Of a stretch of DNA of 64,000 nt, positions 5,285 to 52,420 are shown piece after piece. A program made the position numbers and the translations under genes. The notes beneath the pieces are model-generated. The model saw nothing but the letters and a program-made list of their open reading frames with translations. It did not search any database and had not been told where the DNA came from. Source of the stretch: Utricularia gibba (Eukaryota > Plantae > Magnoliophyta); NCBI GenBank assembly GCA_002189035.1, contig CM007990.1, positions 62,001 through 126,000 on the forward strand. Reading direction: 5' to 3'. Numbering within the stretch: position 1 is the stretch's first letter; every line of letters starts with the position of its first letter.

Positions 5285-8200
5285 CTATGCAGCAACCATG
5301 CTCCCATCTTGGGCATGCGAAAGCCTCTGTAACTGTATCATGCGCGCATATATGCCGTCAGGATGAGCCTTCAGAAGATGGGAATGCGAACCATGCTCTG
5401 CTATTTTTCCATCTTCTAGAACCGCGATAACGTCTGCGTTTCGGATGGTCGACAGTCGATGAGCCACGATGAGAATAGTTTTTCCTGCGCAGGTGTGCTC
5501 CAGTGCCTTTTGTATGCACTTCTCTGACTCTGCATCCAGGGCACTGGTGGCCTCGTCCAGCAGCATTATATCCGGTTTCCGCAAAAAGGCTCGAGCAATG
5601 GCGATCCGCTGCTTCTGTCCTCCCGAAAGCTGCGTCCCTCTTTCCCCGACAAATGTTTTGTACCCATCAGGCAATGAGGAAATGAACTCGTGGGCGTTTG
5701 CCAACTTTGCTGCCTCGATTATGTCGGCCTCTGAAGCTGATTCCCGGCCGTAGCTTATGTTTTCATGTATCGAGGTTGCGAATAAGCATGGTTCCTGAGG
5801 CACAACAGCTATGTGACTCCGTAACAGCTTCAGTTTATATTGCCTGATGTCCTTACCATCGATCAGGATTCGGCCTGATGAGGGCTCGTAGAATCTCTCC
5901 ATCAGTGCAATAATTGTGCTCTTGCCACAGCCGCTGGATCCTACGAGAGCTAGAGTTTTTCCAGCTCGAGCTCGAAGATTCAAGTCACAAAAGATGGAGA
6001 TATCAGGCCTGTTGGGATAGTAGAAATCTACATGCTTGAACTCCACTTCCCCTCTTAGGTGTTCTGGGGCAGGAGTCGCGTTTGGGTCATCGGGTTCGAT
6101 CTCTGTCCTCCGATCAAGCAAGTCGAAAACTGAGCTCATCGCTCTACCGCCCTTGATGAAGTCGGGAGCCAGAGCCAAGGTCTCAGCAGCGCCATTTGCA
6201 GAGACCATGAGGACCATGAAAACTCTGATGGTCTTGGAAAAGTCTGAGATTCCATGCTTCACAAGCCACGAGGCATACCATAGACCAAGGGCGTAGGAGC
6301 CATAGAGCAGGAACTGTGCTATTCCGTAACCGCTTCCAGCTATCTGTCCCTTCCAGAAGCAGCGGCGGAGAGGCGATTCAAGACTGGAGGCGAAAAGGCA
6401 AGCAATCTTCGCCTCCGAGTTGAATGCAGCAACAGTTCGCACGTTGGCTACTGCTTCCGCTGCAAGCTGTGTTGCCTTGGCATGTGCAGATTCCAAGTCT
6501 CCAGAGAATCCAGTCATGAACATTTTCTGATGATACCACAGTTAGAAAATCAGAGTCGTTTTTCCTGCTGCCTTGATGCGTAAGTTTTTGAAGAAAACAA
6601 ACCTGTAAAACAGTGGCAACTACTACGATTGGAAACACGGCAATCAGGATGAGGGAGAGGCGCCACTCCAACACGAATCCGACGGTGCAAGCAATGAGCA
6701 AAAGACTAGAATTCTGCATGATCACAGAGATTCTGTCCCCAATTGCTGATCGAACGTTGTTGGCATCAAGTGCCAGCCTTGCAGAAATCCTAGAGCTCTC
6801 GTTATCTTCTTGATCGAACCAAGCTATCTCGTTCTTCAACACTGCTTCCAGCATTTTCTCCCTGACTCGCTTTGTTAAGTTCTCTCCCACGATGTCCCAA
6901 AAAAAGTGCTGTGAAGTGTTGAAAATCAGCGCAGCTAATGAGACGCCGAAAAACAGGTAGCAGTACTTCCCAATCTCCCTTGCCATGACACCGTGGTTGG
7001 GGTTGTAGTAGACACTGAGAACTGCACTCAGCACATAGGCGAAGAATACGCTGAGAGAGCCACATATGATTGATCCCACAGAGCCAGCCAAAGCATAAGC
7101 CCACTCAGGAGAATTCATCTTTATAAGGCGTGAGAATGAGTTGGCTTGCATCTTGAATTGGAGCTTTCCAAGTCGGTGCTTCGGATATGCAGCATCCAAG
7201 GAGAAAGTGAATTCTGAATGGGAGAAGTCAGAGAATCTTCTTCCGCAAGAAGAGTTCCTAGTCATTATGGGTGAACTCACGGAGTTCCTAGCACTAGAGG
7301 GCCTGCACAATAGACATCTCAGAGATATTTCCAATGCTTACAACCAGTGTAAACATGCAGATGATTCCAAAAGTGTAGGAATACCTGGCACTGCTCTTCC
7401 TTGCGTTGACGAGAGCTGCCTCATGTGCTGCTTCTTGCATCTTTATTAGCTTGGCAAAGACACTATCTTCTCCCTTACAAATAAGCTCATCATGTGTTCC
7501 GATTTCCGACACGGTTCCTTGTTGCAGGACAGCCACACAGTCAGCCTTTTGAATAGTGGAGAGGCGGTGGGCGATCACAAGACTCGTCCTTTCTGTCATG
7601 AAACGATCAAGGGCTTCTTGTACAAGCTTCTCCGATTCAGAATCTAAAGCACTCGTGGCTTCATCCAAAAGAAGGATTGATGGATTCTTCAGCATTGCTC
7701 TGGCTATAGCTATTCTCTGCTTCTGCCCACCGGAAAGTTGCAGTCCCCTCTCCCCAACCTGAGCATTTCCCAAACTAGTTGGTTATGGTGTGTATCTTTC
7801 ACCTAAAACTTGGTGCTTCTACTGTACTTAGCTGACTTTTGAAATTGAATTTGATGACTAAATCATTCCTAGACAGCATAAAGACACACAGATACCTCAT
7901 GAATTCTTCTACAGATACAAGGGGACCTTACATCTTAAATGCTGAACCAAACACTTTACATTACATTGATCGTATTGATGGCTGCCCACTTCTAGATGAT
8001 ATATGTATACATTAAGTTTCCAAGGAATCACTCAACAACTGACAGAGCACCCTGGTTTTAAAATGCATTGACTGAGGGACTTCAAAGCTTCAATGATTTT
8101 AGCTGTGAAAATGCATTTCAATAAATGTAGTATCTGACTAACCTGCGTATCATAACCTTGAGGAAGTTTGGAAATGAATGTGTGAGCATTAGCTACTTTT

Positions 8201-22742: not shown

Positions 22743-23505
22743 TCACTCTGCTTCTGCATTTTTCTTTTGTGTGCCACGGTCTGATTTTTCCTCTGCAATA
22801 ACACGTCCAGTCATCGGATTAACTGGCCTTGTATCTCGTGGGCCGCCCTTTCGTCCCATAGCTAACATGGGAGGCGGGGGAGTAATCCTGCTCGGAAGAG
22901 AAGGCGCTGAACAGGTTCTGAAGGTTGCGCACCAACAGAGAGCCAATATCTACATTTATATCATGTTAGAGACGAAACTAGAAGGCGGTGGTTATGCTAA
23001 GAGAGCCAAATTTCATGAGATACCCCCACCATCTCTCGTGACATTCATCCTCAAAACTATGAATGGGCGGTTCAAGCCATTCGCTTCAGTGAACAAACTA
23101 TGAATGCGCATAGAAACTCGTCAAACTACTCCATTGAAAAGCCCAAAACACCAACACAATAAGCTACATACGCAAGATCTAGAAACTAGGAAACATAATC
23201 ACATCATCACACAAGCTGTGTGTCAAAAACCACTTACTTTACCCTGTCAAAGTTGACACCCATTCTTTTGCCACCATCCTGACCTGCATGCCACATATGA
23301 TAGAACAATCATAAAAAGGAAATGCCTTTTCAATTCAGGTTCTTGAAAGATCAATTAACTCTCTCTCACACACCAGGCAGAGGATTGTAGTATCCAAAAC
23401 TTCCAAATGCTTGCCGTCTCTGGGGGAACGACTGTCCGCTGCCATGACTCGGTAGAACGGCTTATTTCGACATCCCAGTCTTGAAAGCCGCAAACGGACT
23501 ACCAT
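22743..23505 (-). CDS. RPS16: Nuclear-encoded organellar 30S ribosomal protein S16, 3 exons, with two apparent 1-nt deletions in this sequence
   Basis: [37 protein letters not shown] / [16 protein letters not shown] / [23 protein letters not shown]...[18 protein letters not shown]. One base must be restored near 23395 and one near 22878 to keep the frame. Confidence 0.88.
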
Positions 23506-23699
23506 TTTCGCACTTCTTCCCTCCACCCGCACAATTCAGTGACTTCCCAAAACCCTGGTGGATTGGGGAAAAATCGAATGGCGAAACGACAGCGTATCGC
23601 CTTCAGCCACAAATATACGGGCGGAGCCCATTAGGCCCAATTACTCCAACCCGAAAAAGCCCCTTTTAATGTGGGCCCTTCATGTCTGTGATGATATAT

Positions 23700-24055
23700 A
23701 AAATTTGTTTCTTAATTGGTTTTGGTTACCAAGTTATCGTTGCGAGGAAGAGCAATACGTTTTACATTGGAAAAGACACAGGATAGATAACACGAGTCGC
23801 TTGCTCGCTGCAAGGACAGGACGCCACCGTACACAGGATCGGAATGACACTCAAAGCTCCCCCATGGCGGCGCGTGGAAAGGGAAATTTGCCAAAGATAC
23901 AAGTTGCCCTATGTGACATCACCTGCACCACCTTAACCCCTACCATCCATTCATCATTCAGCCTGCTGCTGCTGCTGCTGCTGCTGCTCCACGGAAGTTG
24001 CTGCCTCCATCCGAAGATGAAGCCGCTGCTCCCAGTTGGAGGGGGTGGTATGATC
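23700..24055 (-). ncRNA. IPS1: IPS1/At4/TPSI1-like phosphate-starvation lncRNA (miR399 endogenous target mimic); ends approximate
   Basis: Minus-strand TAGGGCAACTTGTATCTTTGGCA at 23889-23911 resembles the recalled IPS1/At4 motif TAGGGCAACTTC(T/G)ATCCTTTGGCA. TATATAA at 24079-24085, P1BS GGATATGC at 24195-24202, only short ORFs, and no complementary arm that would make a miR399 precursor. Confidence 0.8.
23963..23989. repeat. (CTG)n/(CAG)n microsatellite inside the putative lncRNA
   Basis: cctgctgctgctgctgctgctgctgctcc, eight CAG units on the minus strand. Confidence 0.85.
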
Positions 24056-24078
24056 AAGTGCTGTTGGGGTTGGGATGC

Positions 24079-24202
24079 TTATATAGGCGACGGATGCTGA
24101 GAGGTCGTTATTGCAATGAAAGAAAAGAAGGGTTGGTTGTCATTCAACTTTTGAGTAATGGAAAAGTGTAAAGGGAAATGGGGTATCTTCCATGGGATAT
24201 GC
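24079..24202 (-). promoter_or_regulatory. TATA box plus PHR1-binding site (P1BS) of the IPS1-like locus
   Basis: TATATAA (minus strand, 24085-24079) and an exact GNATATNC match, GGATATGC (24195-24202). Confidence 0.65.
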
Positions 24203-24496
24203 TATATGCGCATCCTCATAAATACAGTTACTCTGCACCTGGAGTGCACCCTTTTCTTTAACCGGGTTTGATTCCTCGGATCTATCCCCGATGCTGCTTT
24301 TCAAAATACTCTTAACTGCAAGATGCTTATTGGGGTAGTGAGTGCTTGTCCATTTGCATACAATTTATCATATCATGTCCATATCCTTCCTTTCTCCAAG
24401 GACTTGGAGTACCATGAAGAATGGAACTATATCTCTGAATTCTGGAGATAACCGGAACTAATGCAACTCATTTACAAGAAACAAACACTCGCAGCG

Positions 24497-26953
24497 TTAC
24501 CTGCAAGCAGCAGCTGTAGCCAGATGTGATGCAGTTTGCCTGAGGGCTAGTTTCATGTATAAGCCCTGCAAAACATTGCGAGCCACAGCTTAAAAATGCT
24601 GAAAGCATTCCCAGCATCAAGAGTTCAGAACATATCGATAATGAAGCGAAACCAAACAAAAGCAAATAATGGAGGTGGAATGTGAGTGGAAAGACTGAAA
24701 ATTACGTTGGTTGTGTGTATTGTTGCTCCGGTGGTCATGCCAATATTTTGATCGGGGACAAGTTCGAAATGGAGGTGCTGCAGCAGCACCGCGAGGGATA
24801 CAATAGCTTCAAGTAATGCAAACTGATCACCCACGCACTTACGTGGCCCTCCACTGAAAGGGATGAACCTGCATATATAGGATGGGATCACCTGCGAAGG
24901 CTACGTAAGATAAAACACTGCCATTGAAATGGGAACCTACTTGAAGTCCGTGTTCGTTTCATTAGGAATGGGCGCGTCTAAATCAAATCTGTGGGGTATG
25001 AAATCTTCAGCTTGTTCCCATACCTTGAGAGAAATAGCCCAAATGGTGATTGCCCCATTGCTATGAGCTACAATGGACACCAACTCATGCAAAACAGGGA
25101 AATACCTGTGAAGAGTGATGAATGTTGTATACTGAGATCATGACATCTTGCCCAGCATTGATCTTATAGTTCCCTGGGAGAACATCAGCTACTTGAGCTC
25201 GTCTCAAAAGAACCTATACCAATGCATAAAGGATCGACTGGTGGATGAGTGGCTTTTGTAACAGCCCATTTTACTGATGACTTACAGGCGGATGAGGGTA
25301 AAGACGCATCGACTCCATTATACAGATTGTCAAGAACTTGAGATTCTTTGTGTCTTCGTATGTGGGAAGTCTGCCATGTAAAACTCTGTCAACTTCTTCT
25401 TGTGCCTTTCTCAATGAGGAAGGGTCCTGAGGAAAAGAATCTCCAATGACGCACTTCAAGTGAACATAAAAAAGAATGCAATGTTTTCCAAATGAAATTT
25501 TTCAATTTTAGCGTGCCTTCATTTTTTATCATAATACCTTTTACTTTACCTTGCTAAGCAAATAACATGTCCAGGTTAACACTGATCCAGTAGTTTCATG
25601 ACCAGCTACCAACATTGATAAAAGGTCATTCCTCAACTGTGCACTTGAAACCTGAAAGAACGAAATTAGCCCATCAAGGTAAAGCAAATGCAGTAACCAC
25701 AGACACCCGTAGTTGGGAATCCAAAAACCTAAATATGCATTTATTTTCTTGGTATAACGAGCTGTATGGTAGTTCTACGTCGCCAAAGCTGTCCTTGGTT
25801 TTTTAAACACTTCGACGCCATACCTCTTCTCTGCTAGCAAGCAGGAACCTGAGAATACTTGGGTCTGTTTCATTTACGTACTCCTCTTCACCTATCTGCT
25901 CCTCCTCACTTTCCACTATTTCTTTGCACTTCGCCACCAGCTCTTCTACAGTTTCCCTTATTAAAGTCACAGCCTTGTCGGCCTTAATTTGCCTAGGCAG
26001 TACTTTACGAAGAGCACTAATCTGAAGAACATCAAGCAGAAAAACCAAGCCATAACTCTCCAGCTGCAACTAAACTACACATTTACGCATTTAAAGGCTC
26101 AAGCAATGACCTGCCTTCCATAATGGCAGTAAATCTGTAGATCGTAATTCAGCCTCTTTCAAGGCAGTGTAAACTGCGTCAATAACCGGGCTGTTAGACG
26201 TAAGAGAATCAAAATTGTAGTTGAACAAAGCCAGACCAATAACATCAAGCGTAAGCTGAGAAAATTTTTCCTCCATGTTCACAGAAGAGCCATTAATGGC
26301 AGAGCTCTTCAGTTTCTCTACTAATTGTTCAGCGCATTTGCAAAAGACCCTTTCAACAATTACCGAGAGAAACTTTTTGTGAAGCGAAGGAACTACAGCC
26401 CGGCGCCTCGCCTGCAAAAACAGCGATTTCAACCATAGAGCAGAAAAAAAGATACCCAAAAAAGAACTGCAAGTACCATCCACAGAGAGCCCTCAGCAAT
26501 GGCGAAACCAGAGCCAAACAAGAATTCGGAAACCTCAGATACCAGCCCCTTGGCATACTTGGTGCCATAGTTCCTCAACACATGTTTAGCAATGGATGGG
26601 TCGCTAACGATTACGAAATTCCGGAGCCCAGCAGGGAGACGGTAAATGGGGCCGTACTCGTTCATCCATTTGAACAGGGGCAGAAAGAGAGCACCCCCAA
26701 GAAGGGAAGACACATCCTCCAACTTGGGTATAGCGATAGGAATGATGGATTCATCACTGGAGCCGAATGAGGTGAACAAGTTTGGGCTAACCCTGGAGGA
26801 GGTAGGTTTGGTCGGCGGAGGATTCTGATCATTGGAAGAGTTCTTCACGGCAAATGCAGGTGGAACAGAGTAGCGGATCCCATAGTGCCGGTGAAGGCTT
26901 TGGAAGCGGTCAAAACACGGCGCGGAGGTGAGGATAGACAGTGAACACGACAT
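24497..26953 (-). CDS. CYP97C1: Carotenoid epsilon-ring hydroxylase, cytochrome P450 CYP97C, 9 exons
   Basis: [48 protein letters not shown]-helix [11 protein letters not shown], ExxR (ESMR) and heme motif [13 protein letters not shown]. The first true ATG is at 26953; the track ORF starts on a GTG. Confidence 0.94.
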
Positions 26954-29621: not shown

Positions 29622-32600
29622 TCATCTCCATTTATCCTGGAGCTCCTTCCTTTCGGACCAGATCCAAGTAACAAAAATTCCCACCACGAGGGCCACAATC
29701 GTGACCAGAAGCAAAGCATAGTTGAATTCTTCTGTAAGTGAATCATATGTTTTTGAAGGTGCAAGCCTGGCAAAAAAGAGATCAATGCCGAACGCAAAGA
29801 CGAGTGTGGTGGACTCCAATTTAGCAGGGAAAGTGGCTATGTCTCTGAGGCCTTCCACCTTGACGGCATGAGTCACATAAGACTGCAACAAGAGAAACAA
29901 CAGCTCATAACAAATTCCCAACTCGAGACAGCAACTTTCCTCATGGCACACAAAGATGATTCTCATAATGCTAGAACACACGTTATTGCATTAGATTCAA
30001 TTAACAAAAGAGAATAATATTGTTACCTGCGGAATAATTGGTAAAAAATCCGTAAGTGGAATAATACCCTCCTCTTTCTCGGCCTGCGTGGGGTTGATTG
30101 TCCTCCGGGGATCGAAAAATCGCTTGTCAAGTGCTAAAACCTGTTATGAAAAATACACGGAATTAAACAAGCAAAGAGAAAAGAGATATGATAGCTTCTC
30201 AACATGAGGTGGGGGGGGGGGGGGAGGGAGGTTGTAGTTCCATGGCTGACCTGATCACCAATTGTGCCAACCAGAACTTGCCTAGAGGTTATGCCTTTAT
30301 TTGTTTGCGTCACCACCATTGCTTTGACAGAATGTGTGAAGAAGTATGACTGAGACTTCATGAACAATTCAAGACGGGAGTATGCTGTGACTGGAGAAGT
30401 GAGATTATGTGCCCCCAGGACAAGCTTCAACACGTCTTTGGTTTCCTGCATACGGATGAGATTTTCATATCAGACCATATTCAAGTTAGTATCTGTGCAT
30501 AGACACTTTGCAAAGAAAGTACCGCACGAGCTTGGTCATAGATTTCAATAACTGCCATCTCATAACGATGAGCTTTTAGGTTGAAGAAGTGATAGACAAC
30601 CCAATTCTCGCTAAAGATCTTCAAAGAAAGAACAAAAATAAGTTGGCATCACCTTAATTTCAACCATTAAATTTTAACCAGGATGCAGCTTTTGATTCAC
30701 TCCAAGAAGACAAAAAAAAAAAAAAAAAAAAAAACCTACAGCATGCACAGGGCCTTGCGATCCATGGTGAGTGACTCTGTGCAGTATGCGACCGGAAACA
30801 GTCTCAATCACATAAACAACCAGCAATGATGCATCTGGAGTAACAGAACCGATAGGCCCCTCAGCTTTCGGTGTAACAGTAGCCAAAAAGAGCAGATTTT
30901 TTGATATATGTTTGTACAACACATTGTGTTCTGAAGTAACCTTAGCTTGAGTATGAACTACCTGAGAAAACAGAAAGCAAACAGAATGAGCGTGGAGACA
31001 AACGAAATGATTGGAAGGCTAACTTACAAAAAAGATGAAAAGGAGAAAGAACCTCATCAGGGTTCCTGGTTGCTGTGGCAATGATCTTTTCTGTGTCTGG
31101 TGGCAAAACAATCGTCCATAGATTTCTTGCGTCAAAAATAAAATTATCTGGCGCCTCAACAAAAGTTTTTTTCAATCCATGCCCCTTAGGATACCCTCAT
31201 CTCTGTTAATAGAATACCAATATATGCTTCCCGATTCCTGCTTAAGAATCCTGAGAGCCTCAACTGTTCTGGGATACAAGTGAGCTTGCTGGTTACCATC
31301 CAAAAGTAAATGCAGACGCTGTTCCAAAGAATCAGTAAAAGGAAGTGGAATAACTCGTGTAATGGAATGAACAGGCCCAATATGATCGAGCTCCTTTCCT
31401 TTGTATGCATCTACAATAGAAAGTACACCAGCAGAATCTAAACCATCCCCACATCTTCCAACAACAAGTATTGATGGATTCTCATCCAAAGCATGATGAT
31501 GTGGATCCTGCCACTGATGCAAACCAAAAAATCTAGGAACTTCGCATGTTTTGGATCTCCATTGAGAATTAAGCAATAATGACCACACGATTCTTCCATC
31601 TCCAGTATGCAGAGCAAAAAGCTTTCCTGCCCGAGTAAGTACTATGAGGAGCTTCCTGAATCCATTGCGGTCACGAGTCATCTTAGTTTTCTCAGAGCTG
31701 CTCACCCTCATTTTATGAATTGCTGCCAAATCATCAGGTGTTGCTACCATTAGACTTCTTTTGACTTTCAGTATATGGCCCTTTCCAAAAGAAAAGAAAA
31801 AGAATCAAACACCACTGCATCGATATCAATCGACATTGAGATACAGAAGCATAAAGATCAATTTCTCAAGCTAAAACACAGAAGGTTTTCACTGCAGCAT
31901 ATTGTGCCAACTGGCTGCTGTAAATAATAAATGCAGAAATTCATGATGTAAATACGTAAACGAATGCACAAAATTCATTTTCAGACACACTGAAAATGAA
32001 TTCATGAACAAGTAATTAACATATTTCCGGAGCCCCTTGAAACTTTATTTGCTGCACATTCTGGAGGACAGTATCTAGGCCCTTTTAGGATGGCTGCTAC
32101 TATCATGAAGAAAAAATCACGGTAGCATTCAGGTGAAAACAGTAACATACAGATCAAAATCAATGATTGCAAGCTAGCTTGGTCAGATGAGTAAATACCT
32201 TCACTCGTTCGAGGATACCATGGTCCACTTTGGCCAATGCAACACCATCCTTTTCAATTGGCAACTCTGATGCTTTTACATCTATGATTGAAGCGAGACC
32301 ATCTTCCCTACTCCAAACAATTTCACCTTGTTGTAACAATAATAAGGAGTGATCTTCCATGACAATAAGAACCCTGAAACCGTTTGACCTGTCCGTTCTC
32401 ACATAACTATTAATGAAAACTTTCGCAACTTGCCCCTTTGATGATCCATTTGAATTTTATCCACCAACAAATTGGATGACCAGTCATTATTAGACTTCAC
32501 AGTCAAGTGAATTTTATTATCCGCTTGATGTACCATGGCACAAGCATTTTCTCCTTCAGAAAGAGGAATAGAGTCACTGACAGCGCTTTCAAGACCACGC

Positions 32601-51711: not shown

Positions 51712-52420
51712 CTGGATCATGTCCATAAAGGAAGCCACGTGCCTCCTCTCCAGTGCCAAATTTCGAACGGCGGTTGCTTGTGTGCCAGGTTCATGGATTT
51801 GACGCTTCAGCTTGTAGCTTTTAAGTCGCCCAATCAATTTCATTTCCTCTTCTTCTTCTTCTCCTTCTCGTGTGTGCAATGCAATGCATTAGTGTCGCTT
51901 TGGACCATTCTAATTCCTTCAAAAAGTTAAACCCGGTCGAAGCTCCCTACTTTAGTCACGTGATTTCCTATCGAGGCCCAATCCCAAGTAGACAGATTAT
52001 TGGGCCGTATCAAGCCCATTCAGCACACGCAGTTGGCCCTAAACCCTTGCCATGAAATATATTAATTTTGACCATAGATGAAATCCTTTATTTTTCAACA
52101 GCAAGATGCTTTCCACACTTGCGCTACGTACCCACATGAACCGTTCCGCTGCACGAAGTATTTTAATCATTAAAAATCATATTAACAGTCAAGGTTCAAT
52201 GGGGATATCGGGCGGAGCCGCCGCGAGAGTTTCAGACAGGCAGACAATGGCTCACAACGCGTTGAAGCGACTGGATGGGCGACACCTCCTGGCACATGGT
52301 CAATGCTTCTAGAACATCATCTACCTCCCTGGCTGACGTGTATATATATGATTTGCAGGAATGAGGGGGTACACAACGCAATCCTAGCAGCTTCTCCCTT
52401 TGTTTGCTTTCACTGATCAG

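Follow-up and report, generated by a model that had tools for sequence, protein, structure and literature searches.

A transcribed locus of Utricularia gibba that probably encodes an IPS1/At4-family miR399 decoy RNA with a mimic motif one base shorter than canonical

The DNA analyzed here, hereafter the window, is a stretch of 64,000 nucleotides of the Utricularia gibba genome (contig CM007990.1, positions 62,001 to 126,000 of the forward strand), and Logan contigs of eight public runs were compared with its positions 23000-24600. From upstream to downstream, the minus strand of this interval carries the end of a cytochrome P450 gene, a short non-coding transcript that contains a miR399 target-mimic site, and the beginning of a ribosomal protein S16 gene, with the following features:

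24251..24565, minus strand: last exon and 3′ UTR of the cytochrome P450 gene, the upstream neighbor (PF00067)
24202-24209: P1BS-like copy matching at 7/8 positions, GCATATAG, adjoining the perfect P1BS
24195..24202, no strand assigned: perfect P1BS, the PHR1-binding motif, GNATATNC (GCATATCC on the minus strand), at −144..−151
24079..24085, minus strand: TATA box of the transcript, TATATAA, located 34 nt before the mapped 5′ end
23704..24051, minus strand: non-coding transcript, longest isoform of 348 nt, without intron, delimited by the contig ends of runs X13 and X14
23954..24010, minus strand: first short ORF of the transcript, 18 aa, MEAATSVEQQQQQQQQAE, spanning a polymorphic CAG repeat
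23889..23911, minus strand: miR399 target-mimic site, TAGGGCAACTTGTATCTTTGGCA when read from 23911 to 23889, transcript positions 141-163
23372..23582, minus strand: exon 1 of the ribosomal protein S16 gene, the downstream neighbor (PF00886, E 9e-11)

The two neighbors are well delimited. The P450 gene has its stop codon at 24497-24499, and the contigs that cover it stop within 24251-24342, which leaves about 200 nt for the promoter of the short transcript. The S16 gene has its own 5′ end (23582/23579); its ATG lies at 23505, and it is interrupted by an intron (23282-23371). GGGCCCA and TGGGCC motifs were also seen at 23600-23690, just upstream of the S16 start, that is, in the 120-nt gap between the last poly(A) site of the short transcript and the S16 5′ end; they are site-II-like and presumably of the kind typical of ribosomal protein gene promoters.

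The transcript between these genes starts at 24051, where a non-genomic adaptor is joined in the contigs of both X13 and X14; this adaptor ends with GGG on the RNA strand, resembles a template-switch oligo and also marks the start of the S16 gene. On the opposite side, poly(A) junctions, visible as T-runs on the plus strand, were found at 23740 (in the deepest contig), 23720 and 23704, thus giving an RNA of 312-348 nt, and the RNA contigs contain no internal joint, i.e., the transcript is unspliced. In X13 and X14, depth falls to zero at 23594-23701 and at 24134-24295, so that neither contaminating DNA nor read-through can account for the signal. The adaptor, the poly(A) tails, the lack of a joint and the silent flanks therefore identify an independent, unspliced and polyadenylated minus-strand RNA, the 256-nt core of which (23700-23955) is present in 9 RNA runs from 3 studies. 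The first-pass annotation, made from the sequence alone, had anticipated a minus-strand transcript of about 350-550 nt: such a transcript exists with its own 5′ end and poly(A) tail, and it measures 312-348 nt. Note that a low-depth RNA contig of X11 runs 47 nt past the 5′ end (24052-24098), over the TATA box, and may reflect transcription running on from the P450 gene or a minor start site further upstream.

The same annotation had called the RNA non-coding, and this agrees with its ATG ORFs, which encode 18, 31, 5, 5 and 1 aa, the longest open frame having no Pfam match. Folding prediction gave no unusual structure for the RNA (z +1.34), and no Rfam family matched anywhere in the window at gathering thresholds, hence no MIR399 gene lies in the window. 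When E values up to 1 were allowed, a lentiviral frameshift element was the sole Rfam match over the locus; with an E value of 0.5, it was rejected as chance. In X13 and X14, the RNA contigs carry a version of the CAG repeat at 23956-23997, which encodes the poly-Q of the 18-aa ORF, that is shorter by 12 nt; the DNA contigs of X1 and X5 are interrupted at this repeat.

The bulged miR399 target-mimic site claimed for the minus strand at 23889-23911 was read back from the window, where TAGGGCAACTTGTATCTTTGGCA has a single match even when up to 3 mismatches are tolerated. This pattern had 0 matches in 100 dinucleotide-preserving shuffles of the window, and a looser search of the window for GGGCAANT-gap-CTTTGGCA returned the same single locus and likewise no match in the shuffles. 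For cofolding, we used five natural miR399 variants listed in Table 6 of PMC6296076, with UGCCAAAGGAGAGUUGCCCUG as the miR399b-type sequence (PMC6296076, Table 6). As first proposed, the 11-nt 5′ block of the site pairs with miR399b positions 21-11. The 3′ block was thought to contribute 8 nt facing positions 8-1; these are indeed paired, and the block in fact reaches 9 nt, facing positions 9-1, with a G:U as the ninth pair. What does not hold is the central GTAT gap, since the cofolds leave unpaired only the target GUA and A10 of the miRNA (b, j and i types), so that a 1x3 internal loop occupies the slicing position, whereas the miR399b seed (positions 1-8) is perfectly paired.

Rules published for endogenous target mimics ask for a transcript bulge of 3-5 nt facing miRNA positions 10-12, tolerate up to 4 mismatches elsewhere, and allow bulges nowhere but in the middle of the miRNA (PMC3441763). 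The site follows them with 11 pairs, 3 unpaired target bases and 9 pairs, and the cofolds contain 0 mismatches outside the middle of the duplex and three G:U pairs. In addition, IPS1/At4 motifs were reported to prefer miR399b/c (PMC3355690), and the C of the site that faces G13 of the miRNA is in line with this preference. A block complementary to miRNA positions 1-10 would read UCCUUUGGCA; the window reads UCUUUGGCA, so that the site is one C shorter than canonical, exactly as had been noticed at first. This difference has an energetic cost: the duplex with miR399b reaches −29.2 kcal/mol for the site, compared to −32.9 kcal/mol for the canonical 24-nt form as given in the first-pass annotation and −41.9 kcal/mol for a perfect site, i.e., the site attains 70% of the perfect value and falls 3.7 kcal/mol short of the canonical one. 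With the A9 isoform (ptc-miR399d type), the two forms are about equal (−22.3 kcal/mol on the window site and −22.7 kcal/mol on the canonical one).

When the whole window was scanned with miR399b, the mimic site gave the best duplex (about −30 kcal/mol), the runner-up reaching about −25 kcal/mol. Shuffled windows attain −25 to −28 kcal/mol, the site being only 2-5 kcal/mol better; duplex energy by itself is not decisive, and it is the sequence, the architecture and the transcript context that exceed chance. The predicted accessibility of the site is average for its transcript; like the unremarkable fold of the RNA, it weighs neither in favor of the decoy reading nor against it. The runner-up duplexes, at 52270-52301 (plus strand), 7722-7747 (minus strand) and 29926-29951 (plus strand), show irregular pairing at about −25 kcal/mol; their energies lie inside the shuffle range, and they were rejected as sites because they are probably due to chance.

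Upstream of the transcript lie the TATA box and the perfect P1BS. The P1BS has to be weighed against its background frequency, since 12 copies were observed in the 64 kb for 11.1 expected, and one copy in a 200-nt promoter would arise by chance in about 4% of cases. Regarding abundance, the depth of the contig carrying the site, relative to that of the S16 contig, was 712/13.8 in X13, 33.7/21.2 in X14 and 18.2/42.8 in X11, so that the ratio spans 0.43 to 52 between runs, i.e., more than 100-fold, contig depth being a rough measure. Because of this spread, the RNA looks strongly regulated. A spread of this kind between runs is as expected for a strongly inducible gene.

The site and its transcript point to the IPS family. 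Its motif was described as 23/24 nt long, made of two miR399-complementary blocks with three nucleotides between them (PMC3441763, PMC9118565), and was reported in all vascular plants examined (PMC9118565), so that a family member is to be expected in this genome. Our locus has the 11-nt block and the 3-nt spacer, followed by a second block of 9 nt instead of 10; pairing is interrupted at miRNA positions 10-11 in the cofolds (b, j and i types), the ORFs are all short, and the RNA is an independent polyadenylated transcript of a few hundred nucleotides. We further take both blocks to equal the canonical IPS family motif in sequence, beyond mere complementarity. The earlier proposal of an IPS1/At4-like lncRNA thus finds support in the transcript, its short ORFs, the TATA box, the central-loop site and, weakly, the P1BS, and we consider with good confidence that the locus is a Pol II gene for a miR399 decoy RNA of the IPS1/At4/Mt4/TPSI1 family. 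Very probably, the RNA represents this known family of phosphate homeostasis in the present genome rather than a novel class of element. A full-text literature search for the canonical and variant motif strings returned unrelated papers only, and our literature search found no paper linking Utricularia with IPS1 or describing a Utricularia miR399 module or IPS-type decoy.

Compared to Arabidopsis IPS1/At4 (At4.1, At4.2), the decoy RNA is likewise a short, polyadenylated and unspliced non-coding RNA with small ORFs, a single miR399-complementary motif broken at miRNA positions 10-11, a P1BS match in its putative promoter and a better fit to the G13 isoforms (miR399b/c). It differs by its 9-nt 3′ block with a 1x3 loop and a G:U at position 9, where IPS1/At4 have 10 nt and a clean 3-nt bulge. 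The Arabidopsis IPS1 transcript is about 540 nt long, and the decoy RNA, with its 312-348 nt, is shorter. One perfect P1BS was found here, unlike in Arabidopsis IPS1, which has two (PMC3355690). Moreover, IPS1/At4 are characterized by phosphate-starvation induction and PHO2 protection, whereas the decoy described here is known from its sequence and RNA contigs. The resemblance extends to Mt4 and PDIL1 (Medicago) and TPSI1 (tomato), the phosphate-starvation-induced members of the family that were described first, which share the conserved nucleotide motif and have only short ORFs; in this comparison, which is limited to the motif, the motif length is off by one base. Finally, like the predicted eTMs of other miRNAs, the site shows a central target bulge of 3-5 nt with few mismatches elsewhere, but unlike these mostly computational predictions in assorted transcripts, it matches a deeply conserved motif within the corresponding gene type.

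From the known family, we infer how the decoy RNA would act in vivo. The miR399 binding site would be its single functional element, to which miR399-loaded AGO1 would bind via the intact seed and the 3′ block; the unpaired miRNA position 10 and the three unpaired target bases would fall at the AGO1 slicing point, and the RNA would be left uncut. Since poor central complementarity was reported to be sufficient for mimicry (PMC6162444), the 1x3 loop should still work, only somewhat less tightly. The RNA would then titrate miR399 and probably promote its decay, which may be HWS-dependent (bioRxiv 10.1101/2025.11.08.687406). With miR399 held back, the PHO2 mRNA would be spared, in agreement with the reported relief of PHO2 when miR399 is titrated by a mimic (PMC3441763, PMC6162444). 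Transcription of the decoy would probably be PHR1-driven through the P1BS at about −150, and phosphate would thereby control its level.

The alternative that survives best, which we still regard as improbable, is that of a weakened or decaying member of the IPS1 family, in which the base loss has cut or abolished miR399 sequestration and left an RNA that is neutral or repurposed. The 3.7 kcal/mol deficit relative to the canonical form and the extra G:U beside the seed would be explained in this way, but nothing is missing from the pairing of the seed (positions 1-8) or from the 3′ block, and poor central complementarity was reported to suffice for mimicry (PMC6162444). Moreover, the RNA is abundant and varies strongly between samples, and the site carries no polymorphism while its flanks accumulate SNPs and a change in repeat length.

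A further step down in probability, and very unlikely in our opinion, would be a chance miR399-like match within an unrelated short RNA, for instance one encoding the 18-aa poly-Q peptide or the 31-aa peptide. Short ORFs do exist in the transcript, shuffles reach −28 kcal/mol, and base frequencies predict some 0.05-0.2 occurrences of the architecture in a genome of 100 Mb when all G:U pairs are allowed. Against this, the sequence pattern had 0 matches in the 100 shuffles, both blocks are taken to equal the family motif in sequence, the ORFs have no Pfam match, and the host gene is precisely of the expected type, i.e., short, unspliced, non-coding and regulated, with a TATA box and a P1BS.

The placement of the site in a long 5′ leader of the S16 mRNA, with no separate gene, was suggested by X6 and X7, in which the site and S16 exons 1 and 2 share a single assembled contig. 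We reject it as highly implausible: X13, X14 and X11 give separate contigs, with zero depth at 23594-23701, the upstream RNA ends in poly(A) at 23740, 23720 and 23704, the 5′ adaptor marks a distinct S16 start at 23582/23579, and the depths of the decoy and S16 differ up to 50-fold within a single run. On these grounds, the X6/X7 join is put down to a merge by the assembler.

That the short site is an assembly error hiding a canonical 24-nt motif has hardly any probability left, for the window does hold one genuine single-base loss, at 23393, but all eight runs flag that position and none the mimic site. Indeed, at the mimic site, the DNA contigs of X1 and X5 and the RNA contigs of X7 and X11 are identical to the window, and those of X6, X13 and X14 are free of indels and substitutions. 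At 23393, in exon 1 of the S16 gene, one base (C on the plus strand) is lost, 8/8 DNA/RNA runs insert this C, and its loss breaks the S16 reading frame after ...KHLEVL in the window as written. The first-pass annotation had considered, beside a lineage variant, that the mimic site might have suffered the same single-base loss as another position of the window; the loss elsewhere is genuine, and the mimic site is unchanged in every run. Since DNA and RNA contigs match the window exactly at the site, the one-base-shorter form is the true sequence and not an assembly or sequencing artefact. More generally, public contigs allow a suspected assembly error to be separated from a true variant, 23393 being the error and the short motif being real.

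Having an IPS1/At4-family decoy gene as the preferred reading, our analysis adds a well-delimited and expressed gene of this type in the very compact genome of a rootless carnivorous bladderwort, a gene that ORF-based gene finding is not expected to call. A phosphate-balance decoy would thus have been retained in bladderwort, apparently under strong regulation. The novelty is a small but genuine variation of loop geometry within a known family, and it offers a natural test of mimic loop tolerance, with a 1x3 loop and a seed-adjacent G:U compared to the canonical 3-nt bulge. On a far more speculative level, and with a low probability, the short motif could be a fixed, lineage-specific retuning of the decoy, within a miR399-PHO2-IPS circuit that was slimmed and rebalanced in the rootless carnivorous plant. 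Such a slimmed circuit may comprise a lower-affinity decoy with a 1x3 loop and a minimal 200-nt promoter, together with a PHO2 leader in which miR399 sites are fewer; the geometry of the decoy would then be the outcome of co-evolution, either with a variant miR399 or with the remainder of the module.

Regarding variation between strains, substitutions were observed within the decoy RNA at 23745, 23758 and 23793 (X5 and X6) and at 23808 (X13 and X14). The mimic site itself displays no polymorphism, despite these flanking SNPs and the change in repeat length. In the 3′ UTR of the P450 gene, an extra G behind 24405 was found in X14 only.
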